A stretch of DNA of 64,000 nucleotides, from assembly GCA_030704615.1 (NCBI GenBank), contig CM060731.1, positions 81,778,001 through 81,842,000 on the forward strand, given 5' to 3'. The notes beneath the pieces are model-generated. The model saw nothing but the letters and a program-made list of their open reading frames with translations, did not search any database and was not told where the DNA came from. Position 1 is the stretch's first letter; each line of letters opens with the position of its first letter. The stretch is from Takakia lepidozioides (lineage: Eukaryota; Plantae; Bryophyta). Shown here piece after piece: positions 2,129-34,600 of this stretch. The position numbers and the translations under genes were made by a program.

Positions 2129-2357
2129 CAGGATGTTGTTGGCAACCCTCATAGAGGTATTTTTTCATGTCAATAAAAGAGGAATGAAAAAACCAAAAAA
2201 ACCATCCTAAAGGTAATTCAGTGTCAATCCTGGTGGCTCATCCGATATGGATGAAAAAGCCGATAGAGGATGGATGAGCCTCTGTCAAAACTTCATCCAG
2301 TATAGGTGAAAAGCCAGGAAATCAACACTGATAACAAACTGCCGGTTCCCAGTAGAG
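2129..2357 (+). mobile_element. Isolated copy of the right end of the CACTA family B element
   Basis: Close match to 21501-21757, including TCATCC/GGATGA subterminal motifs and the terminus gccggttcccagtagag. Confidence 0.75.
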
Positions 2358-6527: not shown

Positions 6528-7723
6528 TGTCGCGCACCTCACTTCGGTAAGCTCCCCTTCAAGTCATAGTTACTCGCTTTGATGCGCGCGCCTGACTCCC
6601 AACCTGGCCGCCCGGTGAGTCCTATGCCACCCCCACTAAGTCCCGCTAAGCTACCACCACCCCTTGTGGAGCCACCCCCACCGCAACCCGGTGTGCGGGG
6701 CTCCACCTAGTGAGCACCTCCGCCTCCTTGAGTGCCTTGGGCACTCAAGGGTGCTTCAGCCCTCCCATACCTATCGCTGCCACTGCCCCCACCACAGGGG
6801 CAGCCCCTCATGTGTCCCGACCCCCTGCCCTCAAGGCAAAGGGCCGCGACACACACCCCTACCAACAGGGAGTCGATGTCCTCATCAACTTGTCCATTTT
6901 GTAGAAACGAACATCCAAGTTGTGGCGTCCCACATCAAGGAGTTTGTTTCTGTACCATGGCGTCCCATGGCAAAGAACCAAACCCCACACTTGACTCTAC
7001 TCTCCACTAGCTAGTTCGGCCGACTTTCTCCAAGTCCCGGCCAAGGGTGGAGCCTCTCCAGCTCCTCCCAGTGCACTCTTCTTGGCCTACTTCAAGGCCA
7101 AGGAACGATCCTCCCCGAGGATCGAATCCCCTTACTGCAACAACATTGCTTGTGATCGCTCATGATGCCGCTTTTGGCATCACCTTGAGCAAGGGTTCAC
7201 CTGGAACCCTCTTTGACTAGGAAGATAACCTTGAACCAACCGTGCGCCCCAATCACTACAATTGGGTCCGCCTTGGAATGCTGGTCTGAGGTACGGGAAC
7301 ACGCCGAAGCCGCACTACGACTTCGTCCTGAGGCTACACGATTATAGTACGTGAACGGAAGCACGTAGCTTCCACGTTAGCCCGCACTACAAGGCAACCC
7401 CCTCGGTAGCGCAGTTATAGTACGCGCACGCGCCAGGTGCGCACTAGCACGTGAACTCCCAAAGAAGGCGCAAGTTTCCTTGCCCCTTGGATGGGAGTCA
7501 CCCAATTTCGGCACTGCGCAAACACACGATTAACCCAATTTACCTCTCCCACTTTTGTAACCTAGCATGCATTCTACACACTAGCCAACCACATCATGCA
7601 TCACCATTCCAAACACAATAGGACGCACAATATTTGGAACCTATTTTCTTTATAACAAATTTTTGTACAATACAAGTTTTTGCAATCGGATTCCTGAGCT
7701 AGCTAAACCGGGCTAAGCATGCA
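6528..7723 (-). repeat. Putative 3' LTR (~1.2 kb)
   Basis: On the minus strand, PPT tgggggaggaaa is followed by TG (7723); the segment ends ...gcgcgaCA (6528) exactly where MULE coding sequence resumes. No second LTR available to confirm. Confidence 0.65.
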
Positions 7724-7757: not shown

Positions 7758-10700
7758 TCAACGCTTCTTCCGCTTTTGAGGTCGCCCTTCGAAAGCTGCA
7801 ACCGCCTCGGATGCGTTTCCCATTTCTGAGGCACGCACCCAAGATGCCTCCACATGATGATAGCCCTTCCATTTGACGAGATACTCCGTTTCTCGGTTCC
7901 TGAACCTCCTCGACTTAAGTATTGCCTCCACCTCGTACTCAGGTTCATTTTCATGATCCAACAGCATAGGTGGCGGACGCAACACTTGATGCCGATTCGG
8001 ACGCGCTTCATCTTTGAAGTAAGGTTTCAAAAGGGAGACATGGAATACTGGGTGCACCTTGCTGTTTGCCGGCAGCTCCAATTCATACACATCCTCATTC
8101 ATAACCTTCCGAATGCGAAAGGGTCCCGCATACGGAGGTACGAACTTCGGACTCACTCCCGGAGGTAGTCGGAAATTCTTGATGTTCAACCAGACCTCTG
8201 TGCCTGCCTCAAACTTCACTTCCCTCCGCTTCCGATTCGCCTGCCTTTCATACCGTTTCCTAGCTTTGGCAATATTGCACTTTGCGAGCTTCAACAAACG
8301 CTCGCGTTCTTCCAGTACCGCCGCTACTGCCGGTTCCTCAACGTCCTGGGCGGCCCAACTTGTCGGCACCAGAGGTGCTTTTCCATAGACCAATACGAAA
8401 GGGGAAACTCCCGTTGCGGAGTGTTATGTGTTATTATAATAGAACTCTGCCGCGTCTAAGTGTTCCATCTAGTCTGATTGGTCTGCCGACACGTAATTCC
8501 ACAAGAATTGCTTCACTACGGAATTCACTCTTTCCGTTTGGCCGTCCGTCGTAGGTCGGAAGGCGGTGCTCATCTTCAGCCTCGTCCCCATCTTCTTCCA
8601 AAGTGTCCTCCAAAATTTACTCGTAAACTTTGGATCGTTATCCGAGACAATATCCTTCGGGACTCCATGATGCTTTAAGACGTGGGCGAAGTAAAGTTGC
8701 CCTGTATCCTGCGCCGTTGCCCTCTCTTTGGTGGGGATGAAATGGCCCATTTTACTGAACCTATCCACCACCACCATGATTGCATCGAATCCTTTTGACA
8801 GCGGCATAGCAGTCATGAAATCCATCGAGATGCTTTCCCAAGTCCCCTCTGGAATCGGCAAGGGTTGTAACAGCCCCGCTTGCTTTTTGTACTTGCTCCG
8901 GTTTTGTTGGCATGTGGTGCATGTCTTGACATACTCCTCTGCCTCCTCCCTCAGTTTGGGCCAGAAATACTCTTTCTTCAGGAGTGCCGCAGTGCGCTTG
9001 GCTCCGCCGTGGCCCGCAAACGGGCTATCATGGCATTCTCTCAAGAGGCTATCTCTGATCCCTCCCTTCGGCACGTAGAGACGCTTTTGCTTATACTGGA
9101 GCAACCCATTTTGCAAGTGGAACTGTGATTTAACCCCCATTCTCAAGTCCTGCATCACGGACTTTGCCAGCTCATCCTTCCGGCAAGCCTTCCGGATCTT
9201 CCTTTGGAGCGCCGTCTCGCCCTTGTACACCAACAAGAGCTGCTGCTTTCTACTTAAAGCATCGGCCACCACATTGTCCCGTCCCGGTTTGTACTGGATA
9301 TCCACGTCGAACACCGCCAAAGTATCTTGCCACCTAAGTTGTTTTGGGGACAACTTGGGCTGCGTGGCAAAATACTTCACTGTGACATTGTCCGTGAACA
9401 CCTTCACTGGGTTGGAACCAACATAGTGGCGCCAAAGCTCAAGGCAATGCACCACCGCCTTCATCTCTTTTTCGTGCATCGGCCACCATCGCTCCACTTC
9501 ATTCAGTTTCTTACTTTCGTAAGCCACTGGACGTCCATCTTGCATAAGTACACCCCCAATCGCGAAGTCCGACGCATCTGTATGAATCTCAAATGGACGA
9601 TCGAACTCCGGGATTTTCAAGACTGGAGCTTCCGCCATCCGCTGCTTCAATTCAGCAAAAGCTTGGCCACAAAAGGTGTTCCATACCCAGATTTTGGATT
9701 TACACAGAAGGTCCGACAGCGGCCCCGCGATCTTGGCGAAATTTCTCACATACTTCCGGTAATAGGAGGCGAGTCCTAGGAAGGATCGCACTGATCCCAT
9801 CCTGTGTAATCACATGCCCCAGGAACTCCACTTTTATGACCCCGAATTCGCACTTTGAAGCTTTGGCATACAGCTTCCCTTCCCGCAATTTTTGGAACAC
9901 CCTTTTGAGGTGCTCCAGGTGCTCCTCCTTTGTTTTCGAGTACACCAAGATGTCGTCGATGTACACGATCACAAAGTCATCCAACCACTCTTGGAAAAGG
10001 CTGTTCATCAGCGTGCTAAATGTCGCTGGTGCATTGGTGAGCCCAAAAGGCATCACCAAGAACTCATATGAACCATACCTTGTCCTGCACGCGGTCTTCT
10101 CCTCATCTCCTTCCGCCACCCGAATTTGGTGATAGCTGGAGCGCAAGTCGATCCGGCTGAAATACTTCGCTCCTGCCAACCGATCGAAGAGGTCGTCGAT
10201 CCTTGGCAAAGGGTATCGGTTTTTGATAGTCACCTTATTCAGAGCCCTGTAATCGACACACATCCGCAGCGTCCCATCCTTCTTGTCTGCAAATAGCACC
10301 GGGGCTCCGTAAGGTGACTTACTCGGCCGGATGTACCCCTTTGACATTAGATCCTTGAGCTGAGTCTTCAGCTCGACCAACTCTCTGTGGCTCAACCGGT
10401 AGGGCGCCTTGGCAGGCGGTTCCGATCCCGGTATCACCTCAATCTTGTGGTCAACTCCTCTCCGCGGTGGCAAGCCGCTTGGTAAATCCTCCGGCATCAC
10501 ATCCTGGTATTTCTCCAAAATCCCCTTGATCCAATCTGGGCTTGGCTCCCCATCGCCTTCTCCTTTCACATCTCTAATGTAAAGCAAAAACTGGGGCTCG
10601 TGTGCCTCCTCCACGGCCCACTTCTTTGCTGACAGAAGGTTTATTCGCCCTCCCACGGATTTGGGCGTTTCAGACACTCGTAAAACCTCGCCACCATTCC

Positions 10701-12247
10701 CACATGACAGCGTGACTACTCTCTTGCGGCCATCTATGACCGCTCCGGATTTGCTCAAAAAGGTCATCCCCAAAATGAGATCCACTCCATCGATCTTGCA
10801 AATGGTGAAGTTCTCACGTCCCTCCCAACTCCCCAGTTGAAGAGGAACATCAATCGCCAACCTTGTCGCCAACTGTGGTTCTCCTTTGGCAGAACGCACC
10901 TCAATAGAGGCCCCCACGTCACTTGTCGGGAGTCCCAGCTTTTGTGCCGTTGCCGGTGTCATGAAGGAGTGCGACGCTCCTGTGTCCACCAACAACGACA
11001 CATTAGTTCCGGATATTATCCCATCCACGAACAATAACTGACTCCCTTTTCGTAAGGCGTCAGTTTCCTGATACAACTCACAAGAAAATTTGCCTATCTT
11101 GCAAGTCCTGGCGACCACCGCTTCCACCAAGCGACTGATGGTATCTTCCGACGGCTCCGTGGTCGCCCGAGTCATGTTCAATTGCCGGGGCTTCGTGCAC
11201 TTCTTGGCCATGTGCCCGGGCTCCCCGCAATTGAAACACACTCCATCAAAGGTCGCCTTCTGTCCGCCATACCCGCTTTTCCTTTCAAAGCTTCGGGTGC
11301 CGCCTTGACGTGTGAAGGCCCTCCCTTCGATTTCCACGTGCCATTGTCGCCGCGTGGCCTATCCCACTTCTTTTCCGGTCGGAAGGAGTCACCTTCCCGC
11401 CGAATCTTCTTGTGGTTTAGCTCCGTACGGCCTTGTCTTTCACCCCTAGGGACATCTGAGAAACATTCAGCCCTCTCAATAGCCTCGTTCAAAGTCTTGG
11501 GTGGCTTCTCCTCCAACTTCCGCCTGGCCCATGGGGCCAGCCCCGCCACAAAGTTGAAGACCATTTCTGGTTCTGCCATGTCCGCGACTTCGAGCAACAA
11601 CATATTGAAAGCCTGGACAACCCCCGAATGTCATCTGTTTGCTTCAAATTCCTCATCTTGTCCCGGGCAAGCCAGGACGCGTTGAGGGGCACAAACTGTC
11701 TCTTCATCAATTCCTTGAACCCACTCTAGTTCAAGGTTTCCGGGCTTGGACCTCGGTCGTGAAGGCGTTTCTGCCACCGTTGTTGAGCATAGCCCCTCAA
11801 ATAGGTGGGAGCCACTTCCACCCGATCCTTGTCACTCAACTTGGCCGCCCGGAAGTACTGCTCTAGCTCCAAGAGCCAGGTGTTGAGTGCCTTCCGATTT
11901 CGGACGCCCTCGAAGGTGCCGGGTTCCTTAGGCTTCACCTTAAACTTTGCCTTAGCGGAAGTGGCATTAGCCGCCTTCAACACGTCTTTCAACGTCCCGC
12001 CAAACTGCGCCAACAACCCTTCCCAAAAGGTTGCCGGCATGGGAGGCATCTCTTGGTTTGTCGGAGCTCTCAAGGATTCCTCGGGCTCCGACTCCTCGGA
12101 TTCCTCTCGCTCTTGGGCGGCCTCGTTTTCGGAAACATGCATCGCTTCCTCAAACGGCCGCCTCGGTGACACGCCGCCCCCATCGGGCTCACCGGGATCA
12201 TCATCTTTTGGGCCGTTCCGCTTTCGCTTCGGCTTGCCCGACCCCAT
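7758..12247 (-). pseudogene. gag-pol polyprotein (gag-PR-RT-RH-INT-chromodomain), disrupted
   Basis: ORFs 11726-12283, 11489-11710, 11178-11603, 9700-11337, 8469-9800 and 7758-8393 are colinear domain fragments. Confidence 0.92.
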
Positions 12248-12275
12248 GATGAGGCCAGTTGGAATGATTCTATTA

Positions 12276-12477
12276 TCACACACAACAGATTGATGCTTGT
12301 GTGAAGGGTTTTCTAGAGGATATCTGGAAAACCCGGATTAATTCCTTATATGATGGTAAGTCTTACTACCACCGTCAGCCCCTGACGGAGGTAGGTTCTG
12401 TTCCTTTTGTTCCCGCTCAAACTGGGCGCAGGGTCAATGGCCACAAGGCTACGGCATACAACGTCTTATGAGTACAA
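12276..12477 (+). mobile_element. 5'-truncated LINE 3' end (same family as 31006-35781)
   Basis: cagattgatgcttgtgtgaaggg...ggccacaaggctacggca...ttatgagtacaa matches 35590-35781. Confidence 0.9.
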
Positions 12478-12479
12478 TC

Positions 12480-12670
12480 TATAATCTCTACTCATAGAAT
12501 GGAAATAGTGTTGTCCTTCATCTACTAGGCCCATATGGCTGCATGCAGACAGATTTGCAATGAGTGTAACATCATTTGGCTTCACCCCTTGCTGTTTCAA
12601 AACTTGGTTGAAAAGTTGCAGAGCATCTTTGCCATGCCCTTGCTGAGAATATCCAAAGACCTGCTTGCCC
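12480..12670 (-). pseudogene. PLS-class PPR gene fragment
   Basis: GYSQQGHGKDALQLFNQVLKQQGVKPNDVTLIANLSACSHMGLVDEGQHYFHSMSRDY (P2-L2 motifs). Confidence 0.85.
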
Positions 12671-13231
12671 TCTTCTACAGCTGGGCACAAGGAGTGTCGT
12701 TGAGGCTGAAAAGGGGAAATTTGACCAGGTCATATCCGTTTGTGTTACTTCGAAGGTGTGGGCCAGCCTGCCAGAAGGTCAAAACAGGTGCATGCTGACA
12801 TATGAAAGTCTGGCGTCGTGGAGATTGTTGGCTGTGAGGTGGGGATGGGGTTATCATCTTTCCTGGTAAATGAAGATATGATTGACATATCTCCTCTCCC
12901 ATAAACTGTCACATTTCCTATAGGAAGTTCTTGTGACGCCCTTGACATGCTGTTGATGTGAATGAAAGCAGGCTGCAGTAGCAACAATGGAGAATTCAGG
13001 GTGTTTGGATTGGGGCAGAGCATACCATGGAAGAGAACAAGGGGCCCAATAGTTCGTGCAGTTGGGGGAGTTGATGTATGTACTTCCCCACACGGCCTTT
13101 GCCTCTCTTCACCATCTGTACCGAAGGTGCATAGATGGAACAAATCTCCAGTCTTTTGGTGTGCTCTTGTAATTCTGATATGCCCATAGACCCACTTCTC
13201 TCTCCTGTCTGTCTTGAGTTCCCCAACAAAA

Positions 13232-16200
13232 ATGAGTTCCCCTCGCCCATGCGGAGGACTTCCAATTAATCACCCCTGTAGACAGAACAACCGGGATGAC
13301 ATGTTGTGGGAAAGAGAAGTGGCATGTGCCCGAGCCCTTGGGCTTTCAAGGATGCCATGCCCATGTGAACGTTGTTTGGGCACTACAAGTAGATCTGAGG
13401 ATGGTGTGCGCACACATCTCCTTCACCACAAAAGACATGCCGCATTTCGGGTGTGGATTGGAGATGGACCTGCAGACGAAGACGATGAGGAGTGGGCACA
13501 ATTGGACAATGCACACCCCCGAGGGAGCCATACAGACAGGCCAGACGAGGACTATGTCATGGGCGCAGGACAGGAACCAGGCATGGACGGAGGGGTGGAG
13601 ATTACTTGAATGTTGCAGGAAGCATTCCACATCATGGACGATGCTGAAGAGGGGGACGGCGCTGCGACAACTGGGGATGGTGATGACGCAGGAAATGAAG
13701 GCATTCACGTGGGGGAAGGCGTGGAAGGAGGTGGAGATGGAAATGAGAATTCTGCACACTTGACACTAGAAGAAGCATGTGTGCCACTGTACGAGGGATG
13801 CAAATCCACAAAGCTTGCTGCCAACATGCTGTTGATGAACCTGTGCACAACCCACGGTGTGTTAGACCATTTTGTGGACGAGTTGTTCTCTTTGCTTCGG
13901 CTGAACTTGCTTCCACAACCAAATGAAATGCCAAAAAGCTGTCACATGGCCAACAAAATGATTGGGAAGCTCGGCCTCAACTACGTGAAAATACATGCAT
14001 GTCCAAAAGGACATGTACTTTTCAGAAGAGAGTACAAGGACGCTATGGAGTGCCCCAAATGCGGTGCAGCCCGATACCATGATGTGGGCAGGTTACAACA
14101 GCCAACCAAGGTGTTGAGGCACTTTCCCCTTATCCCCCGTCTATTACGAATGTACAAATGCAAGACCATTAGTGAGCTCATGACTTGGCATTCCAGGAAT
14201 ACCTCAAACGATGGTGTGGTAAGGCATGTCCCAGATTCCCTTGCATGGAAGCATATAGATGCAACTTGGCCCGATTTCGCCGAGGACCCACGCAATGTGC
14301 GATTGGCTGTATCTACGGATGGAGTAAACCCATACGGATCAAAGAGTTGCACATGGTCCACATGGCCCGTGCAGTTGGTGGCATACAACCTGCCACCATG
14401 GTTGACAACAAAGAAATTCTTTGTCATGTTGTCTCTCTTGATTCTAGGCAAGGAGTCCGTGACAAATGCAAACATAGATGTGTATTTGCAACCATTGATT
14501 GAAGAGCTACAGGAACTATGGATTGGAGTTGAAGCTTATGACATTTTGAAACCAGTAGGGCAACGGAGTTTCACCCTCCGTGCCATACTCATGTGGTCAA
14601 TCCACGATTTCCCCGCATATGGCCTTGTTGCGGGTTGCAAGACGAAGGGCTACAAAGGGTGCCCCATTTGTGGGCCCTATGTGGATTCACGGCACTCAAA
14701 GCCATTAGGGAAGACAATATACATGGGGCATCGACGTTACCTTGCAAGAAACCACCCTTACCGACGAGCAGGCCGGCACTTCAATGGATGTGTTGAAAAG
14801 AGAATGGCACCAAATGCTGTGACACCGGAGGAGACATTGCAATTTGCAAAGGAGAAAGAGGCGTTCATGGAGATTGGAGGGAGAGAAGGAAGTAGTGCGG
14901 ATCCAGCCATGTTGCACGGGGTGAAGCGCCGGACAATCCTTTGGGATTTGCCATACTGGAAGGTGCATGAATCCCCCCCCCCATTCACTCACTTTCTTTC
15001 ACATTGTGCTTCCTGGAATTACCTTTACTGTCAGGAGTCCTTCCACCAACTCCTAAGTCAGTGTAACTACTATGCAGTAGATGTTGAAGTCGTACACCTC
15101 ACTGTGTAGAGGATCGTGCAGTTGTTGAAAGCAGAATGTAGTAACATGGACAACTTCTGCCACATATTCTACTATTTTTGCCCATAGAACTTGGTCTCAT
15201 GGGAGGACATTTGGCATTTCAGAACCTCTTGCAGCGGTACCTCCTGGACCCCATGCATTGTGAGAAGAACTTCTGCGAGAACATTCTGAAGACTATCTTT
15301 GGGGAGAAGGATACGATAAACGTACGAAAGGACATGGAGATTGAAGGGATACGGTCACATCTGTGGCTAAGGCCTGATCCAAATAGACCAGACAAAGTGC
15401 TCATGCCAGCAGCATCATACGTCCTGACCAAATCAGAGCAAGAGGAATTTTTGAAGACATTGGGAGCCATGAAAGTGCCAACCGGATTCTCGGGTGCTTT
15501 CCAAAAGCATGCCATAAACAAGAAATGGTCGAGGATGAAGTCACATGATCTACACGTGATGATGCAGCAGATTTTGCCAGTGTGCATTCGGGGTACGATG
15601 GCGTCGGGTCCTCGAACAGCCATAATGCGTGTAAGTCGAGTGTTTAGGAAGATTTGTGCGAAGGTGTGGGATCCGAGGGACATTACATCGCTGCATGAGG
15701 ATGTGGCTGTGACCCTATGTTTGCTGGAGAAAGAATTCCCTCCATCATTCTTTGACGTCATGACGCACTTGCTAGTGCATCTTGTAGAGGAGCTGCATGT
15801 GTGTGGGCCCGTAGCCACCCGTTGGATGTACCCCATGGAGAGGTACATGAAGGATCTGAAGGGGTATGTACGCAACATGGCACGGCCAGAGGGGAGTATG
15901 GCAGAGGGCTACATCCGCGACGAAGCCCTGGGCTTCATGACAGAGTATATGTCTTCATTTGATGCAATACAACGACGGGTGTGGGACGAGAACGAGGAAG
16001 AAGGAGTTGTAGGCGAGGTCCTAGAAGGTGGTGGAACAAAGCGTGCCATGAGCCCGCGCCTTCGGGATGTGGCACATGATTATGTGCTGAACAACACAAC
16101 AACCATGACACCATGGAGACAGTGGGTGTAAACTTTACATCCCTCCTGTGCTATTCTTAATGGTCTTTGTATGCATGAATTACATACATATATTGTCACA

Positions 16201-17303
16201 AGTCATTCCGGCCACTATGGGAGTGGGATCGTGTACTAACAGGGTGCTTCAGACGACAACAGAGGGTGTTTCGTAGTTGGTGTTGTTGCTTGCAAGTGAT
16301 CATGAAGTAGGCTGCATCACTACAATGTGCTTGAAAGGACACACTCTACATGTGGCATGCATGTACAGTACGGTGTTGGTCAGGGGGACTGAGTTGCAGC
16401 TTCTATTTGGTTTCTGCCAGAAAATACGCAGCGGAGAAGGTCCGCCTGAAAACGGAACGGAGAGCATTTGCAAAAGCATGGCGGAGGGGCGGTCATAGGC
16501 ACAGATCCCCGGTGGAGTACCCGACAACAATGGAGGAGCTGCAGCCCTTTACAGTGTGGGTCAGATCTGCAATTGCAGTGTACGCATCAGAGAACGAGGA
16601 CCCAGATGAGGGCATGGTGAGTCTGTCATTCCCCCCAGGGCTGATTGCCACTTCGTACCGGTCAATGAAAGCATATGGCAATCACTATAGAGTGGACGAT
16701 GCCAACACCAGCCTCCTGGTGACTTATGACAGCGGAGTGGCATCATTTTTTGAACAAGAGAGTAGGAGCTGTGCACGAGATCGGAATCCAATTTCATGCC
16801 ATGTGCAATATGTAGGAGTGATCAAAGAGATCCTTAAACTAGACTGTCTTGTGAAGCCAATTCTATTCCGTTGTTCTTGGGTAAAAGCCAATATGGTAGG
16901 AGAGAATGCCACCATGAAACGGGATGAGTACGGGTTCCTCCTTGCTGATTTCAGAAGAATGCTACCACAAGATGAAGAGCCATTCATCTTCCCATCGCAA
17001 GTTGAGCAAGTTTTCTTTTCAGATGACATCCATGTGCCGGGATGGAAGGTGGTTCTTCACAAGGACCCCCGGGCCAAACGAGTCGTTGCCGACGTCCATG
17101 ATCTGGACCTAGGGGAGAATGCCAACCACGAGGGTCTGAGGGAACCACGAAATCTACCAGATACGGCCGAACCAGTCTCTTTGGAAGGAGCAGTTACCTT
17201 TAATGAGGAAGACATTCCAGGGTTGGTAATTACCGCCAGGCAAATTACAGAAGTGGGTAGTGAAGGGGAAGATTATTTGGATACGGATAGTGAGCTTAGC
17301 TGA
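13232..17303 (+). CDS. CACTA transposase (transposase-associated domain, Transposase_21, DUF4218- and DUF4216-like); exons ~13232-14962, 15223-16121, 16421-17303; one in-frame TGA at 13607
   Basis: CPCERC...HLLHH, IHACPKGHVLF, CPKCG, STDGVNPY, HDFPA, DPMHCEKN, KSHDLH, RWMYPMER, EPFIFPSQVEQVFF. GT-AG junctions are phase-compatible. Confidence 0.92.
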
Positions 17304-18875
17304 ATCTCAGTGTCCATTAAGCCAGCAGCTCATAGACGAGAGCTATGCTAAGGATTCTTACTGTCCTTAGAACCCATTTTGTACAGTCCTGCTTATAAGC
17401 AAGGGCGAGACAGTTAATAGTATCGATAATGTATGGGTATGTGGTCACTGACTGTCTTGTGAACAAACCTTTTTTTGTTCTGCCCATATTGTTTCTGACA
17501 TGTGAGGAGAGGATCGTCTTCATGTACGGAAAGTAGACATGAATGTGTGCATGCATTTTCTGGCCCATCTGCATGCTTTCCAGGAACAAAGACTAGTGGA
17601 ATGGGGGGTGTCTCCAAAGGAGCAGGACCGAACGACACCTTTTTGTGCTTCCCTTGCTTTCCTTCTCACCGTTGTTCCATTCTCCCACCTGCCCAACAGC
17701 AGCACTCTCGAAGCAATAGCATGACATATGTTCGCACATGGTCTTCTTCACCAGTGAATGAGCTTTTATGCTACATGTACTGCCCCGTCCACATTAACGT
17801 TGATCCCTGCAAGCACTTGGCAAGACACCCCAGAGCCGCAAATCCAGCAACCACCACAAACACATCTAACTGATTGTAGTGACACGGGAATAGCTCACTT
17901 GTAGAGGAATTGAACCTCCAGCCAAATGACTGGCTCTGCCCCTTGTAGCACAAGTGCGATGCAAAAACAAGGTGAGTACAAAATGAAGAAGCACTTACGA
18001 GGTCCCCATCCCTGGGATGGGCTCCCACTTCTGCTCTGGAACTGTGCAGGCCTGAGTAGCACCAAATTGCATGAATCCTAAGCCTGAATGTCAAATGCAG
18101 GTTTATGTCGCGATGTAGCACGCCATCATCTTACCTGTAGTTTCCAGTTTCACTGGTGTCACATTTGCCTTCAAGTCAACATCAAAATTAAGTCCACCTA
18201 TGCGCAAATCGCAGAATCTCTCATGACACCATCTGCGTACCGAAAAACTGGTTTGGCATGATATAATTGTAGTTCACAACCTTAATGAACGCTTTCAGCC
18301 TTTACCTCTCCGTGCGCTCCATCGTGCCTCCATCCAGCACATTCTGTAAATGTTGAATGACCAAGAACCCGATGTCACACCGTTCTGAGAAGCCACTACG
18401 CGCGCTCACAGTATACGAAGGCCTTGCCGTGTCAGGATTTGCATTCCCACGTCCCGCCATGTCCGACGCAGCACTTGCATCCTTGCCAGACAGGCCAGGT
18501 GGAGGCAGCATGTATTAAAATATCTATTCCCCCAAGGCCACATTTTGTTTACCTCTTTTTGTGAAAGCCACGTCAGCAAATGTGCTGCCGAGTCATGGGT
18601 GCAATGAATGCGCAGTGGTTCATGGAGTCATTGAGTCGACTACATATTCACTTTAATGAATAAATATCTTTATTCCATTAATCGAATTAGGAATGAAAAT
18701 TTGTAGTCGCATGTGCAGTAATTACAACCACTTGCAATTTTGGCTTTTTCAAATTTTGTCTGTTTCGACTCTCCAGTAGTCCCGTTTACTACCAAGTGGT
18801 TCCCGGAGTGGTCGCGGACATGCAGTCGATTCGAAAAAGACACGAATGCTTCTAGTGAGGACATGTCTGTTGCAG

Positions 18876-20323
18876 ATGAGCACTGGTCCCACCTTCGTGT
18901 GCGGTGTGCAGAAAACATTTGCGGCTGACATGGTCATTCTCGACATCCCGGACGGCCAGGCTGTGCCAGAAGTTCTTCCGAAGGACAAGACGCCAAGCTG
19001 GAACAAATTCGATGACAACTACTAGAGTTGGGTGTTCGGGTTCTGCAATAATTTCCTCTCTGATGCAGGGACACTTCTATTTTTTCAATCATGTGACAAA
19101 GATAGTCGTCGGGCCTTGGCATCATACCTGAAGTCCTCTGGGTTTGAAGTTTTGCGCACATGGAATTGTGTGAACAACCTCTACCTTGTGAAAGGGGGTT
19201 GTCCTGGTCAGCTGGTATGTCGTCTCCCTTCTGTTTGTGCTTTCATGCTGCGTTTTTAATGTTCTCTACACTCCACTATAGAAGAATCTGTAATGATTGA
19301 CACCGATCATGACAGATTCGTGACAAAACAGATTGTTGTATGCCTGTGTTTTGAATAGCCAGTGTACAAACTTCCACTATAGTTTGTGTTTACCACCCTA
19401 ACCTGCTATCTTTGGCAGATGAGGATGTTCGAGGCGATCTGCCTGCAGAGGATTCGCACCTCAAAGACACCATCCTCCGTCCGCAGCTCTGAGATTTCTG
19501 ACCAGGGTTGTTTCGTCAACCCCCCGTATGAGCCGCATGTCGATGACATTTTGTATAACTTCATGCAGTCCAGTCAGACTCTCAAGAGACCACATGGCAC
19601 TCCCTGGAGAGGTGTAAAGGAAAAACCCCAACGTTCATGCAGATACTGCTGGAGTCATGCAGCCACCATTCTGCACGGGTGGTCGATCTTTCTGTGTCCA
19701 CAGGTTCGTTCTCTCTTTCGAATTGATTTTCTTTCACCAGTTTCATCTTCTTAAATCCCCCCCCCACCAACCTGTTCATGTCCTCCTGTCTAGTGCAGGA
19801 GCAACTTACCATGCATGCAAGGCAGGCGGAAGAAGCCTTTTTGGCATGGAGGGTGATTCTGACCTTTACAAGACAGTGCTCCTCCCCCTTTTGTCTGGCT
19901 CCACTTCAGGCACACAGACTGAGAGGATTCAAATCCGAAATGATGACGATCCCGAGGATAAGCAGGTCGACAACGACTTTTCATGTGAGTAAGTCCTAAA
20001 CCCACCTTTGGAGCCATACTCAATTTCTCGGACATCAAATTTATAGTAATAACTTTTTTCGGGTTGTGACTTGCAGGAAAGGCAACGATGGATCTTCAGG
20101 AGATACCCCCATTTGTGACGAGTCTGTTTTCGACAGCCCCCTTTCCAATTTTCTGCTTCCTGCGTATGCCGAAGCAATGGCACTTCATGCGGCCGAGTCT
20201 CTATCCCCTGACTTTTTACTGCCCGGTTGCAGGTGTAGCCAGCGTAGATCCGGAGTTCTTAAATACTTAGACTTAGATGCAGAGGACGCGGGGATACATT
20301 GTACTGACTCTGAGTCAGACTGA
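18876..20323 (+). pseudogene. Spliced beta-class DNA amino-methyltransferase-like gene (N6_N4_Mtase/PF01555-like fold) inside the CACTA element; exons 18876-19214, 19419-19703, 19799-19988, 20077-20323
   Basis: Reconstructed protein: ADMVILDIPDG...FLSDAGTLLFF...SSGFEVLRTW...PWRGVKEKPxTFMQILLESCSHHSARVVDLSVSTGATYHACKAGGRSLFGMEGD, i.e. motif order IV-VI-VIII-X-I-II. Three phase-compatible GT-AG introns. TAG at 19023 and a 1-nt frameshift near 19629. Confidence 0.72.
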
Positions 20324-20454
20324 ACTTCGTTCTTTTAATGTTCTGTTTCATCCTCTTCGGAAAACATTGAATCCCCTTACTCCACTATAGTTGTTCCGGC
20401 AGAAAAAAAAGAAAATCAAAGAAACCACTTTCATTAAAATGGCAATATGTATGA

Positions 20455-20715
20455 ATCCATCCCACAAACCCCACTCACTCTTGTCATATCCATTGTGCAT
20501 TCATCTACTGTGCATTCATGCGTGCTCCATTCATGAATGTTTTCCTTTATTCAACATCCATTATACATTCATCCACTATACTGTGTAATCCACCCCACAA
20601 ACCTACCACTCTCATGTCATATACATTGTGCATTCATCTACAGTGTATTCATGCATCCTCCAGTCATGAATGTTTTCCATTATTCAATATCCATTATAGC
20701 TTCATCCATTTTACT
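20455..20715 (+). repeat. Imperfect tandem duplication (~130 bp unit), CATTCATC-rich
   Basis: cccacaaacc...gtcatat..attgtgcattcatcta...catgaatgttttcc.ttattcaa occurs twice. Confidence 0.7.
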
Positions 20716-23700
20716 ATTACCCATCCCACATTCATCCATCTACTTTCATTTTTCACACTCATCCATCAGTTTGTCATCCACTCTACATTCATCCATCCTT
20801 CATTCATTTGTTGCTTTCAGGTGGGAATGACCACGTCCTTTTATTATGTCGTCCAGCTTGTTTCCGCGGTGAAGGGTGCTCTTCCGCGGGAATACACTCC
20901 ACTTCTTCCTTGGCGCGTGGTGACGGGGCCTTCAAGCGCGATGACGTGGAGTGAGCCCCGTGATGTGGCGTTGGCGCAAGGTGACATGGCGTGAGCGTAG
21001 TTGCGCTCACGCGCTCACGCCGAGGCATCCCTGCAAATGGGGCAGCCACCAAAGCACGTCCGCCATAACACTCTCCCTGCGAGCTCAGAAGCACATCGCG
21101 TGCTTCTGACAACGGGAGAGACAACATAGGGTTTTTTTTCCCCCGATTTTTCGTCCGTGGATGAAAAACAGTAGAACATATCCTTCTACCCTGACGGATT
21201 CCATCCGTGGCAGGGTTAAAAATAGGTTTTAGGGTAGGGGTTAGGGTTTTCCCCTTAACTAATCACAATTAGGGGTAGTAAAGATCAATTCCACGCCATA
21301 ATCATCTGTACTCGTCATCCATAAACATGTGACTTTGTGAGGATGAAAAAGTAGGGAATATCATCCGTGGCAGCGGTTTACCTCCACCTAGGTAATTCAT
21401 CATTCCTCACCAGACCATCCGGTATGGATAAAAAAGAGTCAATGAAAGAGGAATGAAAAAATATTGTCCTGGTAGTTTTTCAACCGGTATGGATGAAAAA
21501 CAGGATGTTGTTGGCAACCCTCATAGAGTCAATTTTTCATTCCTAGGTGACTCATCCGGTATGGATTAGAGTCAATAAAAGAGGAATGAAAAATACAAAA
21601 AACCATCCTAAAGTAATTCAGTGTCCATCCTGGTGGCTCATCTGGTATGGATGAAAAAGCCGATAGAGGATGGATGAGCCACTGTCAAAACCTCATCCGG
21701 TATGGGTGAAAAAACAGGAAATCAACATTGATAACAACCTGCCGGTTCCCAGTAGAGAGGGAAGATATTCATGTCATGTCAAGACATGGACAAGACCAAC
21801 TAGGGTCATTGTCAATTAAAGACATAAACAGCCCATGACAGGGCACCATCTAACATTTCCAGTCTTGTCGTAACACACCAAGTGACGCCACCCATTCAGT
21901 CATGATAAAACAGGGTGGGAGGGCGGGGTATGTTCATAATCAGATTCCTGTCATGTACCCAAGTGACCCTCTTGCACAATATAAGTCAGATTGCAGCCTC
22001 AGATTACATCATCCATAGTTATCCATAAAGATATGCACCATGCAAGATATCATGGGCATATAAGAACATCTTGCCATATTACAGATCCAAGATATATATA
22101 CACAAGTACCTTGAGGTGATCCAAGACAAGTATTATGCAAGGTCCGTAAGAACAGCCTGCCCTACAACACATTCAAGGAGTGTTCACACAAGCAACTGGA
22201 AGGATCAGCCTGCAATTAATTACACTCCGGGCCTGCCACCAAGTAAACTTCTTGGGCAAGGCAAGGCATATTGCAGCTTTACATTTGGCCAAATGTAAGC
22301 ACCCCAAAGCGTGCATCGTGCAAGGCCTTCTGGGTAGGTAAGAACAGCCTATCATCGTTCAGATTCAGGACCTGTGTACACACGACTCTTGCTGGCCCAG
22401 CCTGCAGTAAATCAGACTCCAAACATGCAACCAAGTGATCACTTTGGGCATGACAAGACTGACTGGGACTTCATTCTACATCATGTACAGTTGCCCCAAG
22501 ATATGCATCATGTAAGGCATTTTGGCATGGAAGAAAGGCCTGCCCTGTCACAGCTTCCAGATATGGACACACATACAATTTGAGTGCCCAAGACCAAGCC
22601 CACTTGGCCAAGATAAATCATACAATGCAGGTGGCTGTTCATATGGCAAAATAAAGTAACTAATCACTGGCCAGAGTCCTATAGAGCTTACCATCACTGT
22701 TTCACAGGAGGCTAATGCCATGTTTTGCAAATATAACCTCACTATGCTCCATTCCACAACAAATCCAGGTCTGAAAACGGCCTGTCATTGCCTTATCAGA
22801 CTGTCTTCTTTTACAAAAACCAGACCTCCTCATCCTTAGAACTTGGATGACTGATAGCCATCCTTAAGAATTATCAATATATGAAGCAAGGTAATTTGTT
22901 GGCTCTCTTGTATAGAGAGAGACTTTGTAACATGTTCAAGTCAACAGAGAAAATGTGGTCAAAGGACCTTCGACCGTGTCAAGGCTCCGATTGGTGTGTT
23001 GTGCTGAGTCATGCCCCTTACCTTCCTCTTATGTTTTGCCAAAGCAAGAGGGCTCATGGCCGTTTTAGGCTTGTTTGTTTTGTTTTGTTTTGTTTGTTTG
23101 TTTTGTAGCGTTGAGATCTCCCAAACTACGGGGCACAGTCCCCGTGCTTGGTACCGTTGGAAAGCCCTCGATGAGAAGGGGTGCACAGGCTACCCGAGTT
23201 GTCATCCAGAAACCCCGGTTATGTCTAGACGGGGAGACGAGACCAGCTAGGGGGTGTAACCAGACACCAGGAGTGCCTAGACGCGGTAGCTACATAGTCC
23301 ATATTCGTGAGAAGGACCAGCTGGACCAGTATTTAATGCCCAAAGTTGTAAGTATGCGATAGGGGGCAGTGTGCACTAGAGCACCTGCACCTTTCCGAGC
23401 TCGCCATGCTTAAAATCATCGGCCACCAAGTATCTCCCAAGGACACTAATGAATTTGAGTGTAATAGGTATTCCTCCTTTGCACATCAAACAGAATTCAT
23501 ACCAAGCACGGCAGTCGGATACATTTATTCCGAAGCTCAACTCGTGTTCAAAATTTTGACAGTGTAATGCTACGTTCCATGAGAACTGTAAGATGCTTAG
23601 GCAGCGAAAAACTTGGTAGGAGATCTATATCGCTGCATGCGCAAAACTTTGGGTGCAAATAGCAAAGCTCAAACGCAAAAATCTTGAAATCCTGCATGCC

Positions 23701-28600: not shown

Positions 28601-31600
28601 TTTCCTGTGTCATATTTTCTTTTTCTTGTCCCTTAAGCTCTTTGAACTTCCTGCGGACTTTATAAAGTTCCTTTCCTTCCCTTCTTTCTGTCTGTCAGCT
28701 AACAAGTACATTTGCTAGAGTGGAACTACATCCTGGACTGAATGTTGCTCATCTTACTCTCTGCACAAACGAAGCTCTTGCTCAATATCTCATTATAGTA
28801 TCCCCATACTCTACAGGACAACCTGTTTAGCCCCTTGGCACATCTTTTTATGAGAGCACTTTCTTGTTAAACTGTGCAGAGGAGACATGAAGACGCAATT
28901 GCAGTCTTGGCAAAGATATACCCTCCTGATCAAGTGCAAAATGAGGTCGAGGAGCTCTTTGCTGCAGTCAGCACAGAGGTGGAGGAGAGATCCTCGTTGG
29001 GGAAACTTGGGGTTCAGACTCTGCTGGCCTCTAAACCAATTCGCCTGGCACTCATTGCGGGTGTTGGTCTGCAGGTGCGTTCTCTGTCACTATATCGTCC
29101 TTGTCGTTACTTGAATAGTCTTTGGTTAGCCATAGTTTCGTGCCAAACTAGCAGTTGACTTTCTCCTATTTTACTCTCTATTGGTAAGGCGTCGGTCCTC
29201 CAGGAAATGGCAGTGGATCCTACCTGCACACCTACCTCTCGATCTGTACATGCTGGCCTATTCCCATCTTTCCAATGGTAGGAAATGGCAGTGGATCCTA
29301 CCTGCACACCTACCTCTCGATCTGTACATGCTGGCCTATTCCCATCTTTCCAATGGTATATGACGTTTAGTGGTTGCATGGTGGGTAAAATCTTGGTTAA
29401 CTTACAAAGGTGTACCTTCTTCTTGTTATGAGGTTAAGTCAGTAGGTGTAGTAGACTGAAGCCGAATTCAGGCCACATTGTTATTCATCACTTAATAAGA
29501 GTTCACTACACCAGAGCATGTGGAAAGTTATGGTACTAGCTGTCACATGGAAGTTCTCCTGTATCGTTAGGTTGACTACTCCCAAACTTTCACTTGTTCC
29601 TGGCTAGCAATGCACCCAATGACAGACAAACCCATTGTTTGCTTTCTGGATGGTCCAGATATTCCAGCAGCTAGTGGGAATCAACACAGTAATGTACTAC
29701 AGCCCCTCCATCATTGAGCTGGCAGGGTTCGCCTCCCATCAAACCGCCATCCTCCTCTCTCTCATTGTATCTGGAATGAATGCTTTGGGCACCATTGTAG
29801 GTACGGTTGGCTGAGCTCCTGCTCTCACTCGGGTCTGGAATGATTGCTGTGATTGCCATCATGAACGAGGTGTCAATGTCTTATCGGAAAGATTGTGAGA
29901 GATTACACTGATTTACCTAGCTCTGCGTGGTAAGGTTGCATCCAGTGTTGTGCGGGTCCGGGTTTTGAAGGCCGGTACCCGGCGGGTTAGGATCCGGGTT
30001 ACCCGGACCCGCACCCGGACCCGTGCTATCACAAAAAACCCGGATCTTAACCCGGAGTCATTTCTAAAATGAACCCGGAACGGGACCCGGACCCGCCTGC
30101 TGGGTCCAGAACCCGTTCAACCCGCTACCCGTGGGCCAATGTAGCGGGTCAGGGTCCGGGTCTTAAATTTAGATGGGGCATGCGCGGTCCACCTTAGATC
30201 TTGGTAGGTTTTGTCATATGTGTGGAGGGGACGAGCAGCAATCCGCAGCAGCCAGCCCCACCACGTTGTAGCCCAGTGGTAATGCCCACATACCACCTCA
30301 AAAGCGGTTGTGGGTTCAATCCCCGGAGTGGTGTCACAAAGTTGTGCCCTCTGGGACCATAATTTTCACCTCCCAAAGGAGACGTCATATATTATTATTA
30401 TGCCAGATCCCAGACATCCATGCTATAGTGATCTGGCATATTACTATTCTTAACATGTTTAAAGCATTGATATTGAAAAATAGAAAATGGAACTCAAACT
30501 TAATTTAATTCTTATTCATGGTATACATATTCATATTCACGATATATTTTGAAGGAATATCTCTTAAAATAAAATTCATTATTAGGATTTAAAGTTTTTT
30601 CCAGCCAAAAATAAATTTATCCCTAATTAATCCTAATTTTCTAATTTATTTAATCAATAAATTACGACCCGGATCCGAACCCGTGAACCCGCCAATATTT
30701 CCCAACAACTACCCGGACCCTAACCCGAGTCCGTGTTGACAAACCTGGACCCGAACCTGGACCTGGTTTTTTCCAAATTTCAAAAACCCGGATCCGGACC
30801 CGGACTTGGTTCCGAAAAAAAACCCGCACCCGGACCTGGCGGGTTCCTTAAAAAGGCAGAACCCGCACAACACTGGTTGCATCCCTCACATAGCCCGATT
30901 ACCATAAATTACAGAATCTTTTGCTGTTTCTTACTCGAACGCAAAGCACAACCTTAGATTGCTACACTTAATGACCGCTATTAAGGGTCTCTATTTATAT
31001 CTTGTATCTCCCTGTCCTCTAGGAAGCCTATTGACATTGGGTGGACTTGAAACGGGAGTACATTAATGTCTCTGTGACTAAATGCCGGCCCCTCGTGTCC
31101 TTGTTTGTTTCGACCTGAAGCGCTTTGCTTCAGGTAAGGTAGTGCATTGGATTTAGTTGGAAAGCTTGGGGCCTTTCCCTCTTTAGAATATGCGTACACG
31201 GGCCATTCCCTGCAACTCCCTGGAGTTTGATCTCTGAATGGTAACAAGCGGACTCCTACCGCTTGGGGGCAGCCCCTCCGCCCAAATTGGGCAGTCGTAT
31301 GCTCTGTCTAGCATACTCGGCACTTGGGCTCAGGTTGGTTCCTGTGCTTAAACTTATGGCCTGCGAAAACAATCAAAAATTTAGCTCCTATCAACATCAA
31401 CACTCCTCAGGGTGATCCCTGGGAATTGGTTACTTATGCCAAATCTAGGGCTTCATGTGTAGTTTTTGGGGTGAATCCCAGGATGGACGATGTGTCCTTT
31501 GAATTCATGGCTAATGGTACCATCTCGAGACTTGATAACAGGGGTACGTTGAAGGTTGCAATGACCAAAAGTGCTTCTAATAGAGTCCCGCATCAATTCA

Positions 31601-34600
31601 ATCTCAAAGAAGTTCGTCCCTTGACTGGCTGGAGAGCGGTCTTAGACATTGGTGATTCAATGGGGCGCTCTAGGAAGACAACCAAGGGCAACAACTTCAA
31701 CTTGAGAGTTTCTAATCGGTTTGATGCTCTGGATGAGGTTGAATCCAAACAGCCAGAAAGACAAGATGCCCCTAAGTGTACGGAACCTGAACGTCCTGAA
31801 TCTGAAGGATTTGGTACTCTGAATGGTTTACCAATCCTCAAGGTTTACACAAGACGAACAAATTCTATACACGGGGTAATTGTCCCCAAGCCGTCAGATG
31901 GACAATCTTGTGCAGAGCCTGAACGTCGTGTAACTGAAGGATTTGGTACTCTAAATGGTTTACCAATCCTCAAAGTCTACACAAGACGAGCAAAATCTAT
32001 ACACGGGGTAATTGTCCCCAAGCAGTCTGACGGACAATCTGCCCCTATGTGTGCGGAGCCTGTGCGTCGTGTAACTGAAAGATTTGGTACCCTGAATGGC
32101 TTACCAATTCTCAAAGTTTACACAAGACGAGCAAAATCTACACATGGGGTAACTGTCCCCCCTTTGCAGAATGGTTGGCCGTCCAGGAGCAATCACAAGC
32201 TACCTAGACGACAAACAATTCACACGCAAAGGGCTGGCTTGCGGCTGGCCACTTTCAACTTCTCAGGGTTGACCAACCAAAGGAAACAACTTGAAGTGGG
32301 ACAAGTTCTTCGGACTAATGATATTCATATCTGTGCTGGGCAAGAAACATGGGAAACGTCGGATAAACTGGTTGGAGATGTCATTGGTTATAAATGGGCA
32401 GGTAAGATGTGTACTCTCAAGGCAGCCTCTGCCAAACGTGGTCAAAAAGGGGTCGGATTCTTTGTCCGTGATTTCTTGTTTGACAATTGTGAAATTATCA
32501 ACAAGGGTTTGAGGTACGAGCATAGTATCTGGCTAAAACTGAATTTGAAGGGCGGCATGAGTACAAAGGACCTCTTTGTTGGTTGTGTTTACATGCCCAC
32601 AAAGGGGACCCTTAGTGCTGATGCAGACAAGGCCTTCGAAGATGTAAAGCTGGACTGTGCTTCGTTCCTTGCCAAAGGTCAGGTGGTACTATTGGGGGAC
32701 TTCAATGCCCGGGTGGGCAAAGGGATCCAACAGGACGATATCATTGGACCTTTTGGTGAGGACAAGCTGAATTCTAATGGCAGACAGTTAATTAACTGTC
32801 TAGAAGAGCTTCAGCTTTTGACCTTGAATAACAGGACAATTGGTGACCAAGTGCAGTGGACTCGTGAGAAATCCCAAACTGGGGAACGTTTCATTGTGGA
32901 CTATATCATAATGGACAAAATTTTGTTCCCCCAGTGTGCCAATGTGTTGATCGACAGAACTGATATTGGTACCTCTGACCACTTCCTGGTTTGGACTGAG
33001 ATCAAAAAGTGTTTTCCCACCACCAAGAGATCTGTGAAACGTTTGATTCGGAAGTGGCGCATAGAAAAATTCCACAATGAGGAGGTCAAGGCTGAGTACG
33101 TCCAGGCCTTGCAAGAGGGTCTCCCTCATTTTGTCCAATCGCTCCAAGAACTTCAGTCACGCTCAGTTAACGCAAGAAATGAAGTCGAAAGAGCAGTGGA
33201 CTCTTGGGAGAGTTTCGTTTCCTCCGTGGCTGACAAGATCATTGGGAGAAAACTAATTGTCTGCGGTAGAGCAGTTAATTGGTGGACTAATGAGATTAAA
33301 CTCAAGATAGCTGAGAGACGAGCCCTCTATAAAGAGTGCTGCAATTTGGAAACCAACAGAGAATTGTGGGCGAGGTACTACCAGCTCCGTAAAGATATCA
33401 ATCAGCTTGTTAGGTCTCAGAAGAAATTATACTGGGACAAGTTATACAGTGAAATAAACTCAAACCACCATGGTGGTAATGACAAGAAATTCTGGTTGGC
33501 CCTCCAACGTTTGTACAAGCCGAAAAACGGTCAGCAAGTACAAGCGCTGAAGACTACTAAAGGTGCAGTGGTGACTTCATCGGTTGACATTGTCAAAACC
33601 TTTGAAACTCACTACAGTATCCTTGGCAGAACTTCTAGGTCTAACAGTGAGGGGTCTTCTGCTGAATGGAAGGACACAGTTGGAAAAACTGTTCCTATGA
33701 TTCAAAACAGCCCTGATGAACTGGAGTATATTTCAATGGCTTATAATGCTCCCATTAGTTCTTCTGAGATTGTGGAAGCAATTGAACATTTAAATGGATA
33801 TAAAGCTGGTGGACCTGATGGTATTGTCAACGAGCTTATCAAGCACGGTGGCGATCCCATGATAGAGGCCCTAGTTCTCCTCTTTAACCTTATCTGGAAG
33901 ACTGAAATGATCCCCTTTCACTGGCGACAGGGGGTCATTGTCAATCTATACAAGAAGGGTGACAGAGAAGAACCAGGGAACTACCGTGGCATCACGCTCC
34001 TCAATGCTGTTGGCAAGACATTCTGCAGAGTTATAAGTACTCGTCTCGAGGTTGATCTGGAGTCTAGAGGTTGTTTCCACGAAGGCCAAGCTGGCTTTCG
34101 GCGAAACAGGGGCTGTGTGGATCATATCTTCACTCTAAGCCAGATTATCCAGGGAAGGAAAAAAGAAAGGAGACCCACTTATGTCTTTTTCCTGGATGTC
34201 AAAAAGGCTTATGACACAGTGTGGAGAGATGGCCTATGGTTCCGCCTCTGGTCTTGTGGGATCAAGGGAAAGATGTGGAGAGTTGTCCACAACTTGTATG
34301 CTCGTCACTGTTAACGGACAGAAGTCCAACTTCTGACTTAGACCAAGGTGTAGCTCAAGGATGTACTCTCTCCCCTCTGCTCTTCAATGTTTTCATCAAT
34401 CAACTCCTCGAGGATGTGGAAAGTGAGGGATTTGGGTTAAGGGTGGGTGATACCACCATACCAGCCCTTATGTTTGCGGATGACTTCGCAGGCATAGGGG
34501 AGACTCCAACCAATCTCCAGGAGTTGATTGATTGCGCGAAGAGATACTTTGATCTTTGGGGGCTAGAGGCTAATGTCAGCAAATGTGCAGTGGTAGCATT

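Follow-up and report, generated by a model that had tools for sequence, protein, structure and literature searches.

A 5'-truncated ParB-methyltransferase-like pseudogene of probable Mutator-like origin beside a CACTA transposase gene in Takakia lepidozioides

Few transposons bring along DNA- or chromatin-directed proteins of their own, and such proteins bear on how elements escape from, or exploit, host silencing. A stretch of 64,000 nucleotides from the bryophyte Takakia lepidozioides (contig CM060731.1, positions 81,778,001 to 81,842,000; here called the window) raises the question of whether a CACTA transposon can own a gene for a protein like the bacterial-type, beta-class DNA amino-methyltransferases, as an earlier note on the sequence had claimed for the region 18876-20323. 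The analysis presented here leads to a different assignment. The segment 18876-19992 probably represents the last three exons of a 5'-truncated pseudogene, derived from a ParB-methyltransferase-like accessory gene in a disrupted element of the Mutator-like element (MULE) type.

The locus is a truncated and disabled remnant and amounts to a negative result for the carriage of such a gene by a CACTA element. At the same time it shows an odd catalytic loop that is conserved across distant lineages. This copy is of low interest in itself, while the family to which it belongs remains interesting, and its intact copies are worth experiments.

Structure and lesions of the gene fragment

The surviving methyltransferase-like reading frame comprises ~272 codons in three exons, which occupy 18876-19992 on the + strand, are flanked by canonical splice sites and are present as a single copy within the window. 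Exon 1 (18876-19214) is preceded by AG at 18874-75 and followed by GT at 19215-16. It encodes DIPDG (motif IV-like), FLSDAGTLLFF (motif V/VI-like) and a GFEVLRTW strand, and is homologous to the database sequences P0001, P0004, P0005 and P0006 and to a segment of the related locus L015 (L015:8185-8577). Intron 1 (19215-19418, GT..AG, phase 0) leads into exon 2 (19419-19703), which has a motif VIII-like start, a short variable region, a motif X-like PWRG..EK.P.FMQ and a motif I-like VVDLSVSTG, and is homologous to the locus L003 and to P0127-P0134. Intron 2 (19704-19798, GT..AG) is in phase 1 and lies within the Gly codon of motif I. Exon 3 (19799-19992), homologous to P0132 and P0134, encodes ..GRSLFGMEGD.. 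(motif II/III-like) together with an acidic tail, and closes with a terminal TAA at 19990-19992.

All motifs and open reading frame (ORF) scraps from which the earlier note had assembled its gene are present in 18876-20323 where it had placed them. That model had joined four exons, through introns of phases 0, 1 and 2, into a protein of ~350 aa. Exons 1 to 3 are retained, since their introns are shared with L003 and L015, and so are the phases 0 and 1; the fourth exon (20077-20323, +) lies outside the gene. Neither the loci L015, L007 and L016 nor any of the matching proteins contain a counterpart of it, its junction has no usable donor, and a conserved stop stands upstream of it at 19990. The protein is taken to end at the TAA of exon 3 because L015 has a TAA at the identical place after the same acidic tail. 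Rejection of the fourth exon therefore accounts for the shorter reading frame and leaves only introns of phase 0 and phase 1.

The window copy is inactive, since an in-frame stop and a 1-nt deletion add to its truncation. An in-frame TAG at 19023-19025 interrupts exon 1, while the frameshift in exon 2 reflects the loss of 1 nt in an A-run at 19620-19625, where the relatives continue in frame (..REKTP.FMQ..). Both lesions agree with the earlier description of the copy as dead, and an assembly error could be an alternative explanation of the 1-nt deletion in the A-run.

Two further readings were rejected. NPPY at 19521-19532 in exon 2, considered as the true motif IV, is not conserved in the relatives and is ascribed to chance, and 18805-18837, upstream of exon 1, was considered as a remnant of the L015 linker and matched at E 2.7 with the wrong spacing. 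Just upstream of exon 1, at 18637-18709, we also noted an inverted repeat whose 12-nt arms (CGACTACATATT / AATTTGTAGTCG) are separated by 49 nt and which could be a small footprint or a remnant resembling a miniature inverted-repeat transposable element.

Relatives and selection

Searches were run exon by exon or with natural database ORFs, of which P0132 reads through intron 2 and P0134 is without it. When 1.84 billion representatives were searched exhaustively with exon 1b by HMMER, three true relatives emerged (P0001, P0004 and P0005), all of them partial ORFs on plant-like contigs of metagenomes or of Logan assemblies; two further matches were false positives among repeat proteins. The sole return of a metagenome scan with the exon 1 profile was a bacterial C-methyltransferase-like ORF, which is alike in the ..SAGFEVLRTW.. 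stretch only and was set aside as chance or analogy. The exon 2 profile search returned P0127-P0134. From the contigs of the relatives we obtained the loci L001-L003, L005 and L007-L018 (L015 among them), with L003 and L015 coming from other organisms.

For all three exons, the introns of L003 and L015 lie exactly where those of the window do. With orthologous methyltransferase-like exons and the same intron positions, the window copy falls within the ParB-methyltransferase-like MULE family.

The proportions of synonymous (pS) and nonsynonymous (pN) differences were determined between L015 and L003. While pS was saturated (0.74-0.80), pN was 0.24-0.29 for the methyltransferase-like exons, compared with 0.50 for the linker. 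Saturated pS together with low pN therefore indicates purifying selection on the methyltransferase-like domain, and this selection includes the D[IL]P[EDK]G loop at the position of motif IV.

The partner transposase and the history of the locus

Upstream of the methyltransferase-like exons, the relatives L005, L015 and L007 contain ParB/Srx-like exons (..PIVRP.., DGNHR) followed by a long and poorly conserved linker exon. ParB-like exons and linker were searched for in the window and are absent; therefore, the 5' part of the gene is missing from this copy, with the break at 18876 or shortly upstream of it. The gene of L015 and that of L007/L016 (JGI locus) stand head-to-head with a large MULE-like transposase gene, whose product combines a zinc finger, a MULE-like DDE domain and a SWIM-like tail. 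Because of this arrangement in the relatives, the gene is regarded as an accessory gene of a Mutator-like DNA transposon, and the family would consist of helper genes of Mutator-like transposons in non-seed plants.

The 3' part of such a transposase is present in the window as two ORFs at 4626-6542 (- strand). By tblastn it matched the L015 transposase in one stretch of 176 aa (65% identity, E 3e-74) and another of 383 aa (44%, E 7e-94), and it also matches L016. At its 5' edge (6542) the fragment starts only past the first catalytic Asp, and inspection by eye revealed ..MADSAQAN.. (DDE-like), C.FHW and a CxC SWIM-like tail. It lies ~12 kb to the left of the gene, in divergent orientation as in L015. 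In the Atlas, the clusters nearest to the partner transposase are MULE/ZSWIM at 0.91-0.92, and on these sequence features we call it MULE-like with reservations.

We infer that the two pieces belong to a single disrupted element at this locus. The intact gene would have encoded an N-terminal ParB/Srx-like domain, a long linker and a C-terminal domain with the permuted beta-class motif order. The MULE-type element would then have been wrecked by nested insertions and a deletion, with the 3' part of the transposase (-) and the 3' half of the methyltransferase-like gene (+) as the survivors. Judged by L015, ~6.4 kb between the survivors would be gone, namely the 5' part of the transposase, the intergenic DNA, the ParB exons and the linker. 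In its place would stand ~12.3 kb, mostly a chromovirus and the CACTA transposase gene, along with two unassigned stretches (12483-13295 and 17304-18875). The CACTA transposase would accordingly be an intruder or a neighbor, its adjacency resulting from transposon nesting.

The chromovirus is represented by a Ty3/gypsy internal region at 7758-12482 (-), in which Pfam identified chromodomain, integrase, RNase H, reverse transcriptase, protease and gag. It looks like an intruder between the MULE-type halves and seems to be without a 5' long terminal repeat; its leader (12275-12482) is found at six other places in the window.

Likeness to beta-class amino-methyltransferases

To place the domain, a PF01555 reference profile built from Escherichia coli YhdJ and 13 orthologues was compared with the exons by hhalign. 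The exon 1 family matched the segment of YhdJ from residue 32 to residue 88, in which motifs IV to VI lie (P 0.008). Exon 2 alone aligned to motifs X-I (P 0.07) and exon 3 alone to motifs II-III (P 0.33), the latter in a register that continues gap-free from exon 2. The profile A6 on the intron-less P0134 aligned to YhdJ 135-260 at P 0.001, over 113 columns that run from the variable region through motifs X and I to II and III. The alignments of exon 1 and of exons 2-3 are colinear with YhdJ in the register predicted from the motifs, and they follow the permuted order IV-VIII, target recognition domain, X, I, II, III, in agreement with the beta-class order and spacing that had been read from the motifs beforehand. 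Column shuffles reached the real score in 1/110 cases for the N half and in 3/110 for the C half. These three were aberrant high scores on 4-18 columns, and the next best shuffle scored 25.9 compared with the real 31.0. Reversed-profile controls scored 15 and 12.

Searches of other collections pointed in the same direction. The natural ORF P0132 matched only four PHROG families, all of them methyltransferases (three are named DNA methyltransferase), with E 0.006-0.12 in the motif I-II region. The sole PDB profile match was the motif I-II segment of a class I methyltransferase (E 0.39), and all Atlas feature neighbors of P0001 that carry a family are Rossmann methyltransferases. Taken together, these comparisons suggest that the domain is likely to be homologous to beta-class amino-methyltransferases.

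Alternatively, the three exons could encode a domain unrelated to methyltransferases, that is, a lineage-specific domain of unknown fold in which the likeness of the motifs is due to chance. Several results weigh against homology and agree with such an origin. In Pfam, neither the exon pieces nor the relatives matched any family although E values of up to 10 were admitted, and the gathering score of PF01555 was not reached. NCBIfam and PDB sequence searches with every exon piece and relative gave no significant match either, the HHsearch-style probabilities were low (5% and 20%), and the catalytic tetrapeptide is missing in all lineages. AlphaFold predictions of exon-level natural proteins had predicted local distance difference test (pLDDT) values of 52 (P0001+A1) and 39 (P0134+A6), and because both models are unusable the fold is unproven. 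The profile comparison proposed along with the original claim was in this way positive for YhdJ, whereas the sequence searches and structure models lent it no support. An unrelated domain nevertheless appears unlikely. The two independent halves each reach P 0.01 or below against YhdJ in the predicted beta-class order, with the exon 2/3 register gap-free, all four PHROG matches and the only PDB profile match are methyltransferases, as are the family-bearing neighbors of P0001 in the Atlas, and the motif I Asp and the acidic residue of motif II are conserved.

Catalytic residues and putative function

At the position of motif IV, the window has DIPD and its relatives have DLPE, DIPE or DLPK, while (D/N/S)PP(Y/F/W) was found in no lineage. 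Missing from the loop in every lineage seen are the aromatic residue and the first Pro of this consensus. Motif I reads VVDLSVSTG in the window, where the first Gly is gone; it contains VGTG in P0129 and P0130 and is wholly lost in P0134. The motif I Asp is conserved, and the motif II Glu is found in all lineages. The DIPD and SVSTG of the window had already been recognized as non-canonical in the earlier note. Because motif IV is never canonical and motif I is weakened, we describe the domain as methyltransferase-like and do not file it as a member of PF01555.

From these residues, the methyltransferase-like domain is probably non-catalytic, or at least atypical. To our knowledge, the aromatic residue of the catalytic loop is present in all known active amino-methyltransferases. 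Since the loop described here is without it, non-catalytic binding or shielding is favored over methyl transfer. The protein of an intact copy might bind repeated motifs of its own element, with the methyltransferase-like domain used as a SAM (S-adenosylmethionine)-binding or DNA-binding module.

A 10-mer with a palindromic CTATAG core, TCCACTATAG, occurs between 19272 and 20699 in three exact copies and two copies with one mismatch, all on the + strand; 2.8 matches are expected for the whole window on both strands. Two of the sites, both exact, lie in intron 1, one lies 3' of the gene, and one is found in each unit of a 133-bp tandem repeat. The 10-mer may be an element-specific repeat that is recognized by the ParB-like protein. 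The tandem repeat itself (20454-20715) is located just downstream of the gene, and its two units are 84-86% alike.

It could also be argued that the intact members are active writers of N6-methyladenine (6mA) or N4-methylcytosine (4mC), which use a new catalytic loop and are guided to the element by the ParB-like domain, the window copy being simply a dead one. The strong purifying selection on the exons, loop included, would fit such a role, as would the GxG of motif I that is kept in some lineages (VGTG) and the invariant Glu of motif II. Against it, none of the lineages seen has the aromatic residue or the first Pro, motif I is gone altogether from the lineage of P0134, and the active eukaryotic beta-class enzymes retain the motif IV tetrapeptide (for example TSPPY in MpDN4MT1). 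Judged from these residues, methylation activity of the intact members seems distinctly unlikely. Still a little less probable is the broader proposal in which the intact members would be 6mA or 4mC methyltransferases with a D[IL]P[EDK]G loop, guided by the fused ParB-like domain to short repeats of the element, and would form a module that is mobile between Mutator-type and CACTA-type elements in land plants, similar to the PAG genes of red algae.

Relationship to the CACTA transposase

The transposase on which the claim of CACTA ownership was founded is encoded by a gene of three ORFs at 13296-17303 (+), assigned to the En/Spm, TnpD-type CACTA transposases by Pfam matches to Transposase_21 (6e-75), DUF4218 and DUF4216. 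It has a Cys-rich N-terminal motif, looks nearly intact and occurs as a single copy in the window.

The assignment of the gene to a MULE-type element has a number of points against it. The ParB identity of the relatives' exons is assigned at the motif level, with no support from Pfam and PDB. Pfam likewise gave no match at all for the partner transposase, for which the MULE-like label derives from the Atlas neighbors and from motifs recognized by eye. Neither terminal inverted repeats (TIRs) nor target site duplications (TSDs) were found for either element in searches of the window and the 21.4-kb JGI contig, and because no element ends were found, what is inside and what is outside an element is read from gene order. 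The two MULE-type pieces could, moreover, come from two different copies. The gene and the CACTA transposase also share a strand, and the gene follows the stop of the transposase at a distance of only 1.6 kb. In L016 a Transposase_21 fragment lies near the ParB-methyltransferase/MULE pair, in a position and orientation that differ from the window.

The last two points would be expected if a CACTA element had captured the methyltransferase-like gene, or its 3' module, between the transposase and the 3' subterminal repeats, in a manner similar to Plavaka with PAG2. Also in keeping with a capture are the short direct repeats of subterminal appearance downstream of the gene (21416-21716) and the finding that red-algal PF01555 accessory genes shift among Plavaka, Mutator and Zisupton elements (bioRxiv 10.1101/2025.02.11.637652). 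Several observations argue against it. The gene is 5'-truncated, and to its left, in the divergent orientation expected of one disrupted element, stands the matching half of the transposase with which it is usually paired. The region is not enclosed by a CACTA TIR pair or by inverted subterminal repeats. Neither a TIR pair nor a TSD was found around 13296-20323, and no CACT[AG] occurs in 12283-13300. No CACTA transposase was found in L001-L003, L005 or L015, and the CACTA fragment in L016 differs in position and orientation. The linkage of homologues to CACTA elements anticipated by the earlier note did not materialize, as L015 and L007/L016 pair with the MULE-like transposase and there is no conserved arrangement with Transposase_21. 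Finally, the repeat block of 21438-22805 has a counterpart at 2129-3078 that is not accompanied by methyltransferase-like sequence. The gene is thus not supported as belonging to a CACTA element, and the chance of any remaining CACTA link is slim.

Two sequences were examined as possible CACTA ends and rejected. TTGTAGTG at 17874-17881, considered as the 3' end, is a lone 8-mer with no partner and is unprovable, and CACTACAA at 13381 falls in the coding region of the Cys-rich N-terminus of the transposase.

Some repeats and fragments in this context were recorded in their own right. Five direct CATCCGGTATGGATGAAAAA-like 20-mers occur at 21416-21716 and 2242, all in one orientation and with no inverted partner, and have a subterminal-like look. 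The block 21438-22805 is 66-92% identical to 2129-3078 in direct orientation and may be a separate repeat family or a terminal region of an element. In L016, the Transposase_21 fragment and a piggyBac-like DDE_Tnp_1_7 gene (L016:14220-15686 and L016:17913-18773) are located just past the 3' end of the MULE-like transposase, and the CACTA fragment shares 39-44% identity with the window transposase.

Comparison with known systems

VANDAL elements of the Mutator superfamily carry VANC, an accessory protein thought to counter silencing on the element's own DNA. The plant family described here resembles them in being a second gene in a Mutator-type element, whereas VANC has an unrelated sequence that lacks both ParB and methyltransferase-like domains.

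Among prokaryotic proteins, the closest in layout are the ParB-fused beta-class N6A/N4C methyltransferases of bacteria, phages and plasmids (PF02195 + PF01555) and YhdJ, with which the plant gene shares the order of ParB followed by methyltransferase and of motifs IV-VI followed by X-I-II-III. In contrast to them, the plant gene is spliced and contains a long linker, carries D[IL]P[EDK]G in place of DPPY and a weakened motif I, and gives no direct sequence match.

The 4mC writers MpDN4MT1a/b of Marchantia and N4CMT of bdelloids are, like the plant transposon gene, eukaryotic and of bacterial-type beta-class architecture. However, they are host genes with canonical TSPPY/SPPY and demonstrated activity, while the family studied here is a transposon gene with a degenerate loop. 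No link was found between the plant transposon gene and MpDN4MT1a/b or N4CMT, and a link to the Marchantia enzymes, which the earlier note had suggested, is unlikely as those enzymes keep TSPPY.

Fusions of ParB-HTH (helix-turn-helix) to Dam-type methylases, a different methylase class, were described in chlorophytes and chytrids by Iyer et al. (PMC4738411). In red algae, PAG2 combines a PF01555 DNA methylase with SET, and PAG3, which adjoins inverted-repeat arrays, combines a ParB-like domain with a 2OG (2-oxoglutarate) oxygenase; both are hosted by Plavaka/CACTA, Mutator and Zisupton transposons (bioRxiv 10.1101/2025.02.11.637652). The likeness to the plant family is considerable in that both are transposon accessory genes with bacterial-type DNA-methylase and ParB-like domains, located beside a transposase, associated with element-specific repeats and degenerate in most copies. 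They differ in that PAG2 and PAG3 are two separate proteins with SET and 2OG oxygenase domains, whereas a single spliced gene of a land plant encodes ParB and the methyltransferase-like domain as a fusion. Furthermore, PAG2 matches PF01555 directly, while the plant domain is too divergent for Pfam and is without the catalytic tetrapeptide. The comparison with the PAGs is one of domain make-up. No description of a ParB and beta-class-like fusion in land-plant Mutator-type transposons was found in the literature searched, in which PAG2/PAG3 of red algae come nearest.

Other features of the window

Dense short repeats of the GTGGTT/AACCAC type cover 1300-2006 and end in ..CCTCTAGTG at ~2000-2006, which resembles the subterminal and 3'-terminal parts of a further DNA transposon. 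On the + strand, ORFs of the long interspersed nuclear element (LINE) type were identified at 31324-34314 and 48112-49149, with endonuclease and reverse transcriptase and with a second reverse transcriptase fragment, respectively.

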